Source: Podarcis melisellensis
Lineage: Eukaryota
Reading direction: 5' to 3' (one strand)
Assembly (NCBI GenBank): GCA_964234715.1
Contig: OZ174283.1
Length of the DNA stretch: 64,000 nucleotides
In this document: positions 10,484-17,739 of the stretch, piece after piece
How positions within the stretch are numbered: position 1 is the stretch's first letter
How the letters are laid out: each line of letters starts with the position of its first letter
Notes under the pieces: model-generated
The model's database searches: none
What the model saw: the letters and a program-made list of their open reading frames with translations, nothing else
Told to the model about the DNA's origin: nothing
Program-made: the position numbers and the translations under genes

Positions 10484-11250
10484 TGTCACGGCCACCCAGG
10501 ACGGGTCCCAGCTCACAAGAGACCTCACTCCGTTGCAGCTTATTTACAGGAAAAGTTTATTGAAGATTTCTGCTTCTCATACAGTTCAGCATTGTGGCCG
10601 TACGTCTGCCACGTTAGACCGCTGAAGTCCCCTCTGACTCCTCCCCTCTTCCGCACCAACTTAATAGCCTGGCTCTAGACCACCTCTTCCTCTCCTTTCT
10701 TTTCCGCAGGGTCTTCCTGCCCCCCTGGGTTCCCTCTCTCCGTGACTCGCCTGAGGCTGAATCCTCTGCCGCCTCTTCCCCCCTCTTTCTGGCTTTAGGG
10801 CCGGGCTCCTCCCCTGAGCTCTCTCCACTTCCGCGCGCCTCTACGTTTGAACTTGGCGCGCGTACGTTGCTGCTGACCTTTCTTTCGACCGCTACACCAC
10901 CCCCTGTTCTGCTCTCCACCCTTTCCGGCTGAACACCCTGCTCCAACCCCCTCTCTCTGTTCTCTCCTAACCCTGCTCCCTCCGAGAGGCTGACGACTCC
11001 ACCCCCTTTACTCCGTTCCGGCTGAGACGTCTCTTGCTTCCTCTGTCTTCCACTGGGCTCCTCTCCGCTTCTCCCTTCTCCTCCCCTTTGCTTGATTAAG
11101 GTAACCCCCTTTTGAGAATCCTCTGACTCGCTGCTCAGACTCGTGGATTCCCTCAGAATTCCGTCATCTTCTTCCTCATCCTTCTGCCCCTCCTCCCACT
11201 CGCTCTCCGTCTCCTCTGTCATCTCCTCCTCTCTCCCAGAAACCCTGACA
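10484..11250 (-). repeat. 3' LTR (767 bp)
   Basis: Preceded on the minus strand by the PPT; contains AATAAA (plus-strand tttatt, 10556-10561). Confidence 0.97.
10556..10561 (-). terminator. Polyadenylation signal AATAAA in R of the 3' LTR
   Basis: Plus-strand tttatt, about 53 nt after the pol stop; copy at 16283-16288 in the 5' LTR. Confidence 0.75.
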
Positions 11251-14200
11251 TCCATCCCCCCCTCGAAGCCCCCCCTTCCCCCCTCCCGCTCGCCGGGGAC
11301 CGGTTGTGGAAACTGCGGCTCTTCGGGGGTAGGCTCAGGATACAGGTCGTCTACGTCAATGTTCTCTGCTGGCAGTTCTGTGTATGTGTATTCGAAGTCG
11401 GGTTCTTCCCCCAAATGCTTCTCAGTCTCTGCTTCCATCGCTACTTCCTCCGGTGCTGCCCGCCAAGGACCTATCAGCCACCTCTTACGCCATTCCTCCT
11501 CTGGCTGCTCCTCCCACCAATAAGGGGTTTCCGTGTCCACCCCCGAGCACGATCCCCTGGGCGGGCTTGATGCTGGTGTTCTTTCCTCGGGGGAAGAGAA
11601 ACCCCTGAACGTGCTATCTGACAATGTGGGTGTGAAAAGCCAGTCATCAAAGTACTCAGCTGGCATGGGTCTATGTGGGAAAAGTGCATGGAACTCGTCT
11701 TTCAAAAGGGGTTCGTCTAACTCGTAGCCTGGCACCCAACTATTAGCAGCGGCTGGTGTGCCCTCCCTGGCGAGAAAATATTCAACTCCCTCCTCCCCCC
11801 ATCTCGAGTCCAGTATCTCTGTGACCTCGTTAAGAGGTTCTGGTCTTGGCGATTCCCCCCCCTCAGGCGCCCTCCTACGTGGCTCTGGGGGTGCTCCTGA
11901 CTCTTGAAACCTGTGTGGGGTTTTGTAGGGAGTGAGCACCGACCTATGAAAGACCGGGTGCACCCTGGAACCTTCCGGAAGGGCTAGACGAAAAGCCACC
12001 GGATTGATCTTAGCCTCAACTTGATATGGCCCTAGCTGCCTGTGTCCTAACTTCTTCTTGGCCAATGACCTGGCCGGCATCGCGTGGGCTGCTAACCACA
12101 CCCAGTCCCCAACCTGGATGTCCTCTCCCGCCCTCCTGTGCTTATCGGCCTGCACCTTATACGCCTGTTTCGCCAGCTCCAAATGTCTCCGCAGCTCCTC
12201 GTGCACCTCTTGCAACTCCGCTGCAAACTGGTCGGCATCTTGAGGCCCCCCCCCTCCTGGTGCCGCAAATCTCGGGAAGGTTCTGGGATGACGGCCATTG
12301 TTCGCGAAGAAAGGCGTCACCCCGGTGGATGCGTGTTTCGTGTTGTTGTAGGCGAATTCAGCCATCGGTAGATAGTCCACCCACGCCGCAGGTCGCTGGT
12401 TGGCGTAGCACCGCAGGTACTGCTGCATGATCGCGTTGACCCTCTCCGCTTGACCGTTGGTTTGTGGATGCCGCGCCGATGTCAGGTTGATTTTGACGTG
12501 CAAGATGCCCAGAAGCTTTCGCCAGAAAGTGGAAACAAACTGGCGCCCCCTGTCGGACAAGACGGACTGCGGAAGTCCATGCACTCTGAAGACGTGATCG
12601 ATGAAGAGCTTTGCGGTCTGTTCTGCCGTCGCCACCTTGGCACAAGGGATGAAGTGCGCCATCTTGGTGAACAAGTCCACCACCACTAACACCGCCGTCT
12701 TACCTCTGGAGCTGGGCAGGTCTGTAACAAAGTCCAACGCTACCCTCTCCCACGGTTGCTGCGGTGTCTCCAGCGGTTCTAGCAATCCCGCCTGCTTCTG
12801 GTGCACTGGTTTGGACCTCTGGCAGATATCACACCTGGCGACGTAGTCCGCCACCTCTCCTCTCATCTGGGGCCACCAAAAGTCTCTAGCCACCAACTCC
12901 ATCGTCTTCTCTTTGCCGAAATGGCCTGCACTAGGGGCGTCATGCAACTGTTGCAGAACCTTGGCTCGAAGATCGTCGGTGGGCACGTAAAGGGCACCCT
13001 TACGAGTCAAAAGTCCATCATGCAATTGAAACTCATCGTTGCGTCGCGACCCTCCGCGTAGCTCCTCCATCTTAGACTGTGCAAACTGATCCCTTTGCAA
13101 CGCGCGTCGCACCGCGTCCAGGTCGACTGCGATGGTAGCGCACGTCCACGCCTGCGGTGCGAAAATGTGCTTTGCTGCGATTGGAGCTGCTTCCTCCAAG
13201 TATTGCGGCTTTCGGGACAGCGCGTCTGCAATAACATTGGAGTCTCCTGGGATGTATTCTATTTTGAAGTCGAAATCCGCAAAGAACTCCGCCCAGCGCA
13301 TGTGTCGCTGGGTCTGCAACTTAGCCGTCCGCCAATACTCTAAGTTCTTGTGATCCGTGCGGACCTGCACCGTGTGCTTGGCTCCTATTAAGAAGTGTCG
13401 CCACGCTTTGAAAGCTGCATGAATGGCCAACAACTCCCTGTCCCATATGGTATAATTGCGCTCCGTCTTGCTGAGCTTCCGGGAGTAGAACGCACCCGGT
13501 CGCCAGTTGCCTTGTGAATCCTCTTGCAAAAGAACGGCCCCAACCGCTCTATCTGACGCATCGGTCTCTACCCGCATGGGTTTGCCGGGATTCACGTGGA
13601 GCAGCTGCTCTTCGGAGGCGAAAAGACCCTTAAGCGTCCGGAAGGACCGCTCCGCTTGTTCGGTCCAGACGAACTTCTTCTTCTTGGAACTGAGGGTGTC
13701 AGTGATCGCCGCCGTCGCGTTTGCAAAACCTTTAATAAACTTGCGGTAAAAATTGGCAAAGCCGATGAACCTCTGGACCTCTTTCCGATTTCGAGGGCTT
13801 TTCCAGTCCAACAGCGCTTGAACCTTAGCCCTGTCCATGGCCAGTCCCTCGTCGGACAACTTGTAGCCAAGGAAATCAACCTCTCTGACATCAAACTGGC
13901 ACTTTTCCAACTTGGCGTACAGCCTGTGTTCCTTCAGCCTCTGCAGGACCTCTCTCACGTCCTTATCGTGATCCTCCGGCGATTCCGAGAAAATCAGGAT
14001 ATCGTCGAGAAAGCAGACACACTTTTTGTAGAGGAGACCTGCTAGCACGTGGTGCATAAATGCTTGAAAAACGTGGCTGCCATTTTGGAGGCCGAAAGGC
14101 ATGACTCTGTATTCGTATGTGCCCAGAGGGGTGAACATGGCGGTCTTCCACTCATCTCCTTTCCGGATGCGGATGAGATTGTAAGCTCCACGTAGGTCCA

Positions 14201-15134
14201 GCTTGGTGAAAATCTTGCCCCTCCTGACGGTCGCTAAAAGGTCGTCAATCTTGGGCATGGGGAAAGCTTTGGGCTTAGTCAAGCTGTTGATGAACCTGTA
14301 ATCCACTATAAGCCTTTTGTGGGGCGTGTCTTTCTTCTTCACAAAGAAAACAGGGCTGCCTCCCGCTGCTTTAGATTCCTGGATGAAACCGCGCTTGAGG
14401 TTATGGTCTATGAACTCCCGAAGCTCTTGCATTTCGTCCTCCGACATGGAGTACAGCTTGGCAGCAGGCAGTTGCGCCCCTGGCACTAAATCAATCGCGC
14501 AGTCGTAAGGTCTGTGAGGCGGCAACTTGTCAGCTTCCTTCTCACAGAAAACCTCCAAGAATTCCTGGTACTTGTGAGGCACTGTTTGCACCATACCCAG
14601 ATGCAACGGCTGCTCAGCTTCTCCTCCCTGATCGGTCTGAAAGCAATGCTGAGCACAATACGACGAACAAAAGTTGATCTGCCTCTGGTACCACGCAACC
14701 GCGGGACTGTGCCTCTCCAGCCAACTCATGCCTAACACGATGGGTGTGTCCGATAAGTGGGTGACATTGAAACTAATAAGCTCTCGATGGTTGCCAATCT
14801 GCATCATCATGGGAGGGGTTTGCTGCACCACTTGCCCCCCCAGCAACCTCCTGCCGTCCACCGTGACCACGTTCAGAGGCGTCGTTGCAGGCAGGAGCGC
14901 CATGTTGTGCTGCTTAACGAACTGCAGTCCCATGAAGTCGGCGTTGCTTCCCGAATCGATCGTTATTGGAACCTCGAGGAGTCTCCCATCAGGCAACTGG
15001 AGTGTCGCTGTGAGCAGAACTGCCGGTTTGGGAGGCAAAGGGTCCACGCTCTGCAGTGATGCTGGGGGCTTGTCTACAGATCCGCCTGGCTGAGCCCCAG
15101 TAGCTCTGCTTCCAGCCAGGCACTGTCGTTTCCC
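10614..15134 (-). CDS. pol: Pol (protease-RT-RNase H-integrase-chromodomain plus long C-terminal tail), expressed as Gag-Pol by -1 frameshift
   Basis: Protease IDSGS (DSG at 14949-14957); RT LDLRGAY...FLDD (14001-14012); RNase H TDASD...RELLAI...TDHKNL...ADALSR; integrase HHCC, D-D-E (DFVTDLP, SDRG, QAERVN) and GPY (12024-12032); chromodomain-like segment 11688-11834; uninterrupted frame, -1 relative to gag. Confidence 0.96.
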   Translation of the reverse strand, partial: GKRQCLAGSRATGAQPGGSVDKPPASLQSVDPLPPKPAVLLTATLQLPDGRLLEVPITIDSGSNADFMGLQFVKQHNMALLPATTPLNVVTVDGRRLLGGQVVQQTPPMMMQIGNHRELISFNVTHLSDTPIVLGMSWLERHSPAVAWYQRQINFCSSYCAQHCFQTDQGGEAEQPLHLGMVQTVPHKYQEFLEVFCEKEADKLPPHRPYDCAIDLVPGAQLPAAKLYSMSEDEMQELREFIDHNLKRGFIQESKAAGGSPVFFVKKKDTPHKRLIVDYRFINSLTKPKAFPMPKIDDLLATVRRGKIFTKLDLRGAYNLIRIRKGDEWKTAMFTPLGTYEYRVMPFGLQNGSHVFQAFMHHVLAGLLYKKCVCFLDDILIFSESPEDHDKDVREVLQRLKEHRLYAKLEKCQFDVREVDFLGYKLSDEGLAMDRAKVQALLDWKSPRNRKEVQRFIGFANFYRKFIKGFANATAAITDTLSSKKKKFVWTEQAERSFRTLKGLFASEEQLLHVNPGKPMRVETDASDRAVGAVLLQEDSQGNWRPGAFYSRKLSKTERNYTIWDRELLAIHAAFKAWRHFLIGAKHTVQVRTDHKNLEYWRTAKLQTQRHMRWAEFFADFDFKIEYIPGDSNVIADALSRKPQYLEEAAPIAAKHIFAPQAWTCATIAVDLDAVRRALQRDQFAQSKMEELRGGSRRNDEFQLHDGLLTRKGALYVPTDDLRAKVLQQLHDAPSAGHFGKEKTMELVARDFWWPQMRGEVADYVARCDICQRSKPVHQKQAGLLEPLETPQQPWERVALDFVTDLPSSRGKTAVLVVVDLFTKMAHFIPCAKVATAEQTAKLFIDHVFRVHGLPQSVLSDRGRQFVSTFWRKLLGILHVKINLTSARHPQTNGQAERVNAIMQQYLRCYANQRPAAWVDYLPMAEFAYNNTKHASTGVTPFFANNGRHPRTFPRFAAPGGGGPQDADQFAAELQEVHEELRRHLELAKQAYKVQADKHRRAGEDIQVGDWVWLAAHAMPARSLAKKKLGHRQLGPYQVEAKINPVAFRLALPEGSRVHPVFHRSVLTPYKTPHRFQESGAPPEPRRRAPEGGESPRPEPLNEVTEILDSRWGEEGVEYFLAREGTPAAANSWVPGYELDEPLLKDEFHALFPHRPMPAEYFDDWLFTPTLSDSTFRGFSSPEERTPASSPPRGSCSGVDTETPYWWEEQPEEEWRKRWLIGPWRAAPEEVAMEAETEKHLGEEPDFEYTYTELPAENIDVDDLYPEPTPEEPQFPQPVPGEREGGRGGFEGGMDVRVSGREEEMTEETESEWEEGQKDEEEDDGILRESTSLSSESEDSQKGVTLIKQRGGEGRSGEEPSGRQRKQETSQPERSKGGGVVSLSEGAGLGENRERGLEQGVQPERVESRTGGGVAVERKVSSNVRAPSSNVEARGSGESSGEEPGPKARKRGEEAAEDSASGESRREGTQGGRKTLRKRKERKRWSRARLLSWCGRGEESEGTSAV
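11251..11264 (-). other. Polypurine tract GAGGGGGGGATGGA
   Basis: Directly abuts the TG of the 3' LTR on the minus strand. Confidence 0.9.
15062..15134 (-). other. Programmed -1 ribosomal frameshift signal (G GGA AAC plus predicted pseudoknot)
   Basis: Slip heptamer at 15128-15134 is in the gag frame; 6-nt spacer; 9-bp stem GCCUGGCUG/CAGCCAGGC (15113-15121 with 15084-15092); loop CUGGGG can pair with CCCCAG near 15062-15067. Confidence 0.88.
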
Positions 15135-16150
15135 TGAAGCTGCTCCCCTGGTTGCACCTCTGCTGTTACAGTTGCCAGCGCTGCAGTGTGCTTCTGGAGC
15201 CTCTGGGGGCACTCTTTCGCCATATGGTGCGCACTGTCACAGATGTAACACTTCCTGGTTCCTCTAGGAGGCTTCGCTTTGGCTGCACCAGGGACAGGGC
15301 TCTGGGACGGCTTCTGAGCCCTAGCACCACCAATCTCCATTGGCTCCTCGCTGTCCTTCCCCATTGGCGAGGGGTGCGCACGGCTGAAGTCCCTGTGCAC
15401 AAAAGGGAGAGTCCTTGCTTGCGCACGCGCTTGGGGCCCGTCCTCCTCGTGCCACGGACGCCCCTCATGTCGAATTCCAATAGCTAAAGCCCGGTGCACC
15501 ACGTCTTCTAGGGTCTGGGGTCTGTCCCCCCTAGCGATCTCATCCTTGATGGGGGGGCTCAATCCCTCCCAAAAAAGATCTCTGACCGGTTTACTGTCCT
15601 TTGGCCAATCTAAGGCGGTGAGCAACGCAAAAAATTTAGAGTGGTATTGGCGCACAGTCGCTTTCCCCTGCCTCAGCCCGTGCATTTGACGGCGCGCAAT
15701 GTCCACATCCACAGAGGATTGAAAACAAGAATCCATCGCTTTGATGAACGCAGTTGAATCGCGACGGGCCGGTCCATCTTCGCGCCACAAATTGCGTAGC
15801 CAAGCCCTGGCCTCCCCATGCAGGTGCGAAACAATGAACCCCACTTTCTCCTCCTCATCTTTAAAATCGTGACGGAGTAAGTGCAGTGCATATACAACGT
15901 CCGCTCTGAAATTGGGATAGTCTTGCAAGTTGCCATTAAAATGCGGAACTAGGGCACCCCCCCTCCGTCCAAGCGCAATGCCCTCCGCTCTGGATCCTGG
16001 GGCCCCCGCCTTGTCCGCGCGCTCCCACCTTGCCTGCAAATCCTGGCACGTCTTCTCCAAGTCGTCATTCTTCTTCTGCGAAGCAATGACTGCCGATGTG
16101 AGAGCGGTAACCTGATTCCGCAATGCAACCAGCTGCTCCTCAGCGCTCAT
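15074..16150 (-). CDS. gag: Gag polyprotein (358 aa from the first ATG after the PBS)
   Basis: ATG at 16150 in the context gcagccATG; N-terminal coiled-coil-like segment; Ty3/PEG10-type capsid motifs (FNGN, KVGFIVSHLHGEARAW, LRQG, EPMEIG); CCHC knuckle CYICDSAHHMAKEC. The ORF-track start at 16255 lies inside the LTR. Confidence 0.95.
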   Translation of the reverse strand: MSAEEQLVALRNQVTALTSAVIASQKKNDDLEKTCQDLQARWERADKAGAPGSRAEGIALGRRGGALVPHFNGNLQDYPNFRADVVYALHLLRHDFKDEEEKVGFIVSHLHGEARAWLRNLWREDGPARRDSTAFIKAMDSCFQSSVDVDIARRQMHGLRQGKATVRQYHSKFFALLTALDWPKDSKPVRDLFWEGLSPPIKDEIARGDRPQTLEDVVHRALAIGIRHEGRPWHEEDGPQARAQARTLPFVHRDFSRAHPSPMGKDSEEPMEIGGARAQKPSQSPVPGAAKAKPPRGTRKCYICDSAHHMAKECPQRLQKHTAALATVTAEVQPGEQLQGNDSAWLEAELLGLSQADL

Positions 16151-16197
16151 GGCTGCTCCCGTTCGTGAGCTTCGCAAAAAAAAATTTTTGCTTTGAG

Positions 16198-16208
16198 AGA
16201 GGGGACTT
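16198..16208 (-). promoter_or_regulatory. Primer binding site of self-priming type (AAGTCCCCTCT)
   Basis: Begins 2 nt after the 5' LTR; lacks the TGG start of a tRNA PBS; exact 11-nt complement of AGAGGGGACTT at 16362-16352 in the LTR. Confidence 0.85.
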
Positions 16209-16210
16209 AC

Positions 16211-16977
16211 TGTCACGGCCACCCAGGACGGGTCCCAGCTCACAAGAGACCTCACTCCGTTGCAGCTTATTTACAGGAAAAGTTTATTGAAGATTTCTGC
16301 TTCTCATACAGTTCAGCATTGTGGCCGTACGTCTGCCACGTTAGACCGCTGAAGTCCCCTCTGACTCCTCCCCTCTTCCGCACCAACTTAATAGCCTGGC
16401 TCTAGACCACCTCTTCCTCTCCTTTCTTTTCCGCAGGGTCTTCCTGCCCCCCTGGGTTCCCTCTCTCCGTGACTCGCCTGAGGCTGAATCCTCTGCCGCC
16501 TCTTCCCCCCTCTTTCTGGCTTTAGGGCCGGGCTCCTCCCCTGAGCTCTCTCCACTTCCGCGCGCCTCTACGTTTGAACTTGGCGCGCGTACGTTGCTGC
16601 TGACCTTTCTTTCGACCGCTACACCACCCCCTGTTCTGCTCTCCACCCTTTCCGGCTGAACACCCTGCTCCAACCCCCTCTCTCTGTTCTCTCCTAACCC
16701 TGCTCCCTCCGAGAGGCTGACGACTCCACCCCCTTTACTCCGTTCCGGCTGAGACGTCTCTTGCTTCCTCTGTCTTCCACTGGGCTCCTCTCCGCTTCTC
16801 CCTTCTCCTCCCCTTTGCTTGATTAAGGTAACCCCCTTTTGAGAATCCTCTGACTCGCTGCTCAGACTCGTGGATTCCCTCAGAATTCCGTCATCTTCTT
16901 CCTCATCCTTCTGCCCCTCCTCCCACTCGCTCTCCGTCTCCTCTGTCATCTCCTCCTCTCTCCCAGAAACCCTGACA
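16211..16977 (-). repeat. 5' LTR (767 bp)
   Basis: Direct repeat of 10484-11250 at offset 5727, no mismatch seen by eye; lies upstream of gag on the minus strand. Confidence 0.97.
16388..16393 (-). promoter_or_regulatory. TATA-like box (TATTAA) of the LTR promoter; predicted TSS about 16362
   Basis: AT-rich hexamer in a purine/GC-rich U3; starts 31 nt upstream of the predicted self-primer 5' end. Confidence 0.7.
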
Positions 16978-17739
16978 GTTACCTTGTCATATGATACCAA
17001 TTATTTTAAGTGTGTGTGACATATAGTTGACACACTGTAAATGGGATGTTGCCTCTCAGCAGGTTTCATTCCTAAACCTGCTGAACTTAAAAGGGGGCGG
17101 GGGGACCTTGTATAGTGAAGAACAATATGCCATAAAAATATTTCCATTCATTAAAGGTATAATCCATTAAAATCATGGTAAGATTTGCCATTTACTTCAG
17201 TGGAATTTGAGTTGCAACCTTACAGTGCAGTCTTCTGTGTTTTACACAGGCGTGCCTTTAAATTCAATGTGATTTATAACTAGGTAAATGCATGTAACTG
17301 GTTGAAATATTTTAGTTTTCCATAATCTGAGCTAATTAGAAAAAGAGAAGCATAAGCTTCAAACGAGGCTCATTGAAACTACATACACATATGTAAATGT
17401 TTGCAACACTTACACAAAGAAATCTTAAATAATCTACAGTTATATTTCTTTTTAATTTGATACTTCAAGCACGCCTCAGGAAAGAATACAGGAAATGTAG
17501 GCAGAAAATCCAGAAGGAATGACCTTTTGATAAAATGAATGTTTACATCAATGCAACATGGATTTTGCAGAGTTAATACTCAGACTTATCAATTAGAAAG
17601 TGTACACTGACTCTCTCTCTCCTCTCTCTCTCTTTAATTGCTTCTAAACACGGAAGGAAGATATCTAGACTGTAATGGTGTAATGGGGTTTAAACATTAC
17701 ACAACTTTGTCAGACTGAAATTATATATATATATATATA

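Follow-up and report, generated by a model that had tools for sequence, protein, structure and literature searches.

The Ty3/Gypsy retrotransposon found on the minus strand of the DNA analysed here (one stretch of 64,000 nt, referred to below as the window) very likely primes its minus-strand DNA with its own RNA, the 11 bases at the 5′ end of the transcript folding onto the primer binding site (PBS). We assign this reading a probability of about 0.8. Primer and PBS pair over exactly 11 bp, the pairing is maintained by compensatory changes in sister families of lacertid lizards, and distant relatives show the same layout.

The inspection of the window showed the element to have the following parts, listed in the direction of its transcription:

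16978..16982, minus strand: upstream copy of the target-site duplication, GTAAC
10484-16977, minus strand: Ty3/Gypsy LTR retrotransposon, 6,494 bp, with gag and pol intact
16211..16977, minus strand: 5′ LTR, 767 bp, TGTCAGG...CGTGACA
15074..16150, minus strand: gag, 358 amino acids plus stop, beginning at the ATG at 16150; Ty3 capsid, Retrotrans_gag and CCHC knuckle
10614..15212, minus strand, -1 frame relative to gag: pol ORF, with PR, RT, RNase H, IN, a Tf2-1-type SH3 and a long tail
15128..15134, minus strand: slippery heptamer G GGA AAC, whose phase fits a -1 gag-to-pol frameshift, within the 139-nt gag/pol overlap
11251..11264, minus strand: polypurine tract GAGGGGGGGAUGGA, abutting the 3′ LTR
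10484..11250, minus strand: 3′ LTR, 767 bp, the first 637 nt of which form the last 212 pol codons
10479..10483, minus strand: downstream copy of the target-site duplication, GTAAC

A repeat search followed by extension showed the 5′ and 3′ LTRs to be 100% identical. The extension covered 771 identical bases, of which the LTR proper (TG..CA) accounts for 767; the extra four are a coincidence between the start of the leader (GTAAG...) and the target duplication (GTAAC). The LTR ends fit the terminal consensus of the Sushi clade, TGTYANR...CNTNACA (PMC3601003). Pfam matches in pol were RVP_2, RVT_1, RT_RNaseH, Integrase_H2C2, rve and SH3_Tf2-1, and the domain order PR-RT-RH-IN, together with the Tf2-1-type integrase SH3, is that of the Tf1/sushi group. 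A chromodomain (PF00385) was not found in the window pol at E<=0.01 in Pfam; Podarcis relatives with 50-63% identity carry one. The closest solved match was PEG10 for gag and Ty3 Gag-Pol for pol. The 90% identity that pol shares with proteins of Podarcis muralis identifies the host as a lacertid lizard; the nearest matches outside reptiles were amphibian, fish and fungal (40-44%), followed by plants (34-36%). The element is a Ty3/Gypsy retrotransposon of the Tf1/sushi kind that is intact and was inserted recently in a lacertid genome. This agrees with an earlier reading made from the sequence alone (the sequence-only reading), which had called it an intact amniote element; it may be active at present. 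No further copies were found in the window. In one organism, 3,848 contigs aligned to the element and 1,712 of them were at least 99% alike, which makes this a very abundant family; contigs of three further organisms also contained it. A search for RNA sequencing runs containing the element found none.

The features that bear on priming lie in the 5′ LTR and just beyond it:

16388..16393, minus strand: TATTAA, starting 31 nt before the primer; the sole TATA-like motif upstream of AATAAA
16352..16362, minus strand: self-primer AGAGGGGACUU (= AGAGGGGACTT), LTR positions 616-626; the predicted first 11 nt of the RNA and the start of R
16283..16288, minus strand: poly(A) signal (AATAAA), 74 nt downstream of where the primer starts
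16209..16210, minus strand: spacer of two bases (GU) separating LTR and PBS; the G of the spacer can pair with RNA base 12 (C), leaving the U bulged
16198..16208, minus strand: primer binding site AAGUCCCCUCU (= AAGTCCCCTCT), 2 nt after the 5′ LTR

The sequence-only reading had reported GT and then an 11-mer, with no TGG, after the 5′ LTR, an exact complement of this 11-mer 31 nt from the start of TATTAA (16393), and mismatches on both sides of the match. All of this was found to be correct: AAGTCCCCTCT occupies 16208-16198 and its complement 16362-16352, and the duplex is exactly 11 bp long, with a C.C mismatch at one end and a U.C mismatch at the opposite end. The base preceding the self-primer is C, so the predicted -1/+1 dinucleotide is CA. 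The 60-nt leader, which runs from the LTR to the gag ATG at 16150, contains no TGG, and no PBS of the tRNA type (a TGG start, pairing with a tRNA 3′ end) lies directly after the LTR. No tRNA genes were found in the window or in the gecko sequence L001 (see below), and a search of Rfam returned chance-level matches only.

Taken by itself, the match in the window is weak. In 20,000 dinucleotide-preserving shuffles of the LTR, which served as the control for chance, 4.8% contained a match of at least 11 nt to a word located 0-6 nt after the LTR (p 0.048), a consequence of the GA-rich LTR and the CT-rich leader. Requiring the match to lie about 30 nt after a single TATA-like box, a condition set post hoc, lowers the chance some 70-fold. 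The significance of the match comes from where it lies (about 11 of the 757 places possible) and most of all from covariation in relatives. None of the 40 best-supported variants listed for the contigs of the four organisms fell in the primer or the PBS; the neighbouring bases 16196, 16336 and 16380 do vary among these contigs.

In the region 15700-17000 of the window, many contigs from all four organisms matched the element only from about 16402-16407 upward. Just below that point their sequence is their own, and TATTAA is replaced by TTAAAC or TTAAGC. These partly matching contigs are sister subfamilies, which have the upstream part of U3 in common with the element and differ in the promoter box and in R/U5.

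A search with gag identified eight relatives, 59-77% identical, on short public contigs. For L008, L010 and L012 (gag identity 59-60%) both the LTR region and the PBS are on the contig, and these were compared with the window element for covariation. L005, L006, L007, L009, L011 and L013 include the PBS side at most and were therefore unscored, and L014 lacks upstream sequence. Positions 1-24 of L010, abutting the LTR, are the remainder of an Illumina adapter and thus an artefact of the assembly. The primers and binding sites of the four lacertid families are:

Window: primer AGAGGGGACTT, PBS AAGTCCCCTCT
L010: primer AGATGGGACTT, PBS AAGTCCCATCT
L008: primer AGATGGAGCTT, PBS AAGCTCCATCT
L012: primer AGACGGAGCTT, PBS AAGCTCCGTCT

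In all four families the PBS is the exact complement of the family's own primer, at homologous places. Three of the 11 pairs have changed on both sides, and all 44 cells of the alignment are paired: at one position G-C, U-A and C-G are all found, and a further two alternate between G-C and A-U. The covariation score was reached by none of 500 shuffles, a value obtained with four sequences only. When the partner was slid by 1-3 columns, pairing fell from 96% to 33-45%. The change on both sides that a primer and its binding site should show across related families, and that the sequence-only reading had proposed to look for, is therefore present in three sister families, and it supports the self-priming interpretation. 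The surroundings of the duplex are also shared: in each of the four families it measures exactly 11 bp, is followed by the spacer GT and has a primer flanked by C on both sides; the PBS follows the primer at a distance of 149-154 nt, and AATAAA follows it at 73-74 nt. The box TATTAA is kept in L008 and replaced by TCTTGAAC in L010 and L012, which makes the promoter argument weaker than the window alone implies.

In two of the contigs that carry the PBS side, L006 (positions 30-42) and L009 (positions 27-39), the last base of the PBS is C instead of T, and in L006 a 3-nt deletion follows immediately. The C would break pair 1 unless the primers of these two copies, which are off the contig, had changed as well.

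The leader RNA was examined for structures around the duplex. Minimum-energy folds contained the full duplex in the four lacertid leaders and in the distant element L003, and eight of its 10 pairs in the gecko element. A consensus fold built from the four lacertid leaders with RNAalifold recovered the primer/PBS helix together with three further structures, given here in window coordinates:

16330..16348, minus strand: predicted short hairpin that follows the primer, invariant and without covariation (alignment columns 15-33)
16321..16329, minus strand: 5′ strand of a long-range helix, located in R, which pairs with the 3′ end of U5
16214..16222, minus strand: 3′ strand of the same helix, at the end of U5, overlapping the end recognised by integrase
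16231..16251, minus strand: U5 hairpin (columns 112-132), with a largely invariant loop and an invariant core GUGAGC

Both the R/U5 helix and the U5 hairpin include pairs changed on both sides (four of nine in the former, two of six in the latter). In Tf1, folding of the RNA places its first 11 bases on the PBS, and cleavage by RNase H falls between bases 11 and 12 (PMC7175516); the predicted R/U5 helix and U5 hairpin resemble the Tf1 structures as reviews describe them.

The same layout was found in three elements that are only distantly related to the window element, and whose primer words are unrelated in sequence:

L003 (pol 49%): primer ACTCTCTTCAA, PBS TTGAAGAGAGT; 11 nt, about 30 nt after TATAAATA; spacer GT
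L002 (pol 51%): primer GAGGCAAACAA, PBS TTGTTTGCCTC; 11 nt, 32 nt after TATTTA; spacer TC
Gekko japonicus element, L001:4792-10625 (pol 44%): primer GTGCTGGCAA, PBS TTGCCAGCAC; 10 nt, about 33 nt after TATATAT; spacer GA

The gecko element (KQ756312.1) is a near-intact Gypsy element with LTRs 99.3% alike, and it lies within a gene model of 47 kb that bears the annotation retrotransposon-like protein 1. The 11-base length occurs in six of the seven elements examined and is also the length proven for Tf1, which suggests that the size of the primer is set by the reverse transcriptase/RNase H itself. In the six elements for which both sides were seen, a pair can form between RNA base 12 and the spacer's first base, leaving the second bulged; this pair is A-U in L002 and C-G in the other five. 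Judged from these sequences, this arrangement may mark the site of the RNase H cut.

Self-priming could also take place with a primer other than the exact 5′ end of the RNA, if transcription started further upstream or if the primer came from the 3′ LTR copy or from another RNA packaged alongside. Two of the sister families lack a conserved TATA-like box, as this would allow, and a copy of the 11-mer always lies close to the RNA's 3′ end as well (element positions 616 and 6343). We nevertheless consider such a primer unlikely: the duplex stops at the predicted +1, with a mismatch beyond it, in all six cases with 11 nt, the -1/+1 dinucleotide is CA in the four lacertid families, and the spacing from TATA to primer is 30-33 nt in the five elements that have the box (window, L008, L002, L003 and gecko). 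Covariation proves pairing, not priming, and the two 11-mers might therefore form a conserved long-range contact serving packaging, dimerisation or translation control, with another primer being used; the flanking helices would suit a structured leader with several roles. The position of the 3′ partner, exactly where a PBS is expected (2 nt after U5), speaks against this, as do the lack of any alternative PBS candidate in the 60-nt leader and the agreement in length and layout with the experimentally proven Tf1 case, so that a contact of this kind is very improbable. Chance complementarity in a GA-rich LTR, with a tRNA or tRNA fragment as the primer, would agree with the shuffle value for the window alone, and is rejected as contradicted by primer/PBS covariation: there are compensatory changes in three sister families, three distant elements share the design, no TGG follows the LTR, and a fixed host tRNA shared by the families is incompatible with a PBS that differs between them and covaries with the LTR.

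Self-priming by the 5′ end of the RNA would proceed as follows. Transcription would start at or very near 16362, at the CA some 31 nt downstream of the TATA-like box. The RNA's initial 11 bases would then fold back over some 150 nt onto the PBS, 2 nt after U5, with the covarying R/U5 helix and the U5 hairpin probably fixing primer and PBS in position. If the Tf1 model applies, cleavage by the element's own RNase H would follow base 11; pol does carry the RNase H domain that such a cut needs. Extension from the 3′ OH so released would run through GU, U5 and R as far as base 12, giving a strong-stop DNA of about 143 nt. If, by analogy with other retroelements, the plus strand copies the attached primer, such copying would tend to make the PBS follow the primer, which would favour concerted change of the two.

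The primer also has a coding role in the 3′ LTR. The pol ORF runs 637 nt into this LTR, through all of U3 and 22 nt of R, and stops 8 nt after the primer copy. This copy (10625..10635, minus strand) lies in codons within ...S-E-G-T-S-A-V-stop, that is, among the last seven pol codons; the sequence-only reading had stated that the primer sequence codes for protein in the 3′ LTR. The part of the pol tail encoded by the LTR was compared over the following segments:

Window, 10614-11250, minus strand
L008:22-667
L010:28-617
L012:1-263

In L008, L010 and L012 the pol frame alone is open through U3, the other frames having 2-7 stops, and the pol stop codon is at the same place in all four families. 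The tail contains the conserved motifs SLSSESEDSQKG, RAPSSN, EPGPKAR and RKRWSKAR..WC. Pairwise dN/dS values of 0.19-0.31, obtained from a protein-guided alignment and possibly somewhat low, indicate that the tail is under purifying selection. The conserved GCGCGCCAAGTTCAAA block and the TATA-like box lie in coding sequence of the 3′ LTR too. Among the families, the codons of the primer changed between GAG, GAU and GAC, between GGG and GGA, and between ACU and GCU, all of them wobble or conservative changes. We lean slightly towards the view that in the lacertid lineage almost all of U3 is coding, so that one stretch of DNA serves as coding sequence, promoter, start site and self-primer, and that the co-evolution of primer and PBS has been channelled into wobble or conservative codon positions.

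Self-priming is not a new mechanism in the Tf1/sushi group, to which the lizard element adds a member. The sequence-only reading had described it as known for Tf1 and proposed for the group, and the literature agrees (PMC7175516, PMC4600332, PMC6317226). It has been implicated from fungi to vertebrates (PMC4600332; PMC6317226). According to PMC6317226, which cites Butler 2001 (J Mol Evol 52:260), self-primers were described in yeast and vertebrate Tf1/sushi elements; the same paper (PMC6317226) places the amniote members Amn-ichi, Amn-ni and Amn-san in the V-clade of GyDB. A broad search of the literature for lizard chromoviruses gave no useful result.

The self-priming of Tf1 and Tf2 of Schizosaccharomyces pombe goes back to Levin 1995 and 1996 and to Lin and Levin 1997 and 1998, as these are cited in PMC7175516 and PMC4600332. 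The lizard element resembles Tf1 and Tf2 in its predicted 11-base primer, taken from the RNA's own beginning, in a PBS that lies beside U5 and lacks complementarity to a tRNA, in additional predicted helices flanking the duplex, and in having both an RNase H domain and a Tf2-1-type integrase SH3. It differs from Tf1, which has one ORF, in having gag and pol linked through a -1 frameshift, and in its amniote host. The primer and PBS words are also unrelated to those of Tf1, whose PBS starts with ATAAC, and the cut and the start site, proven for Tf1, are predicted for the lizard element. For Tj1 of Schizosaccharomyces japonicus (PMC4600332), which like the lizard element has separate gag and pol, self-priming was likewise inferred from complementarity between the PBS and the 5′ LTR. 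In the Tcn1 clade of Cryptococcus and mosses (PMC6317226) it was predicted, in the same manner, from a PBS complementary to the LTR and not to a tRNA; these elements, however, have fungal and plant hosts, and their pol is only distantly related. Sushi-ichi and its relatives, the vertebrate members of the Tf1/sushi group, are, like the lizard element, vertebrate Gypsy elements of the chromovirus type; the LTR ends of the lizard element fit the Sushi consensus, its gag is related to the sushi-derived PEG10/RTL genes, and self-priming was, in the accounts cited above, proposed earlier for this group. Unlike them, the lizard element represents a young, intact and very high-copy lacertid family, Pfam detects no chromodomain in its pol, and the evidence consists of natural covariation across sister families. 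The known view of the mechanism is unchanged by it. What it adds is a well-documented amniote case of Tf1-type self-priming in a very abundant young lizard family, in which natural compensatory mutations supply a type of evidence usually obtained by mutagenesis.
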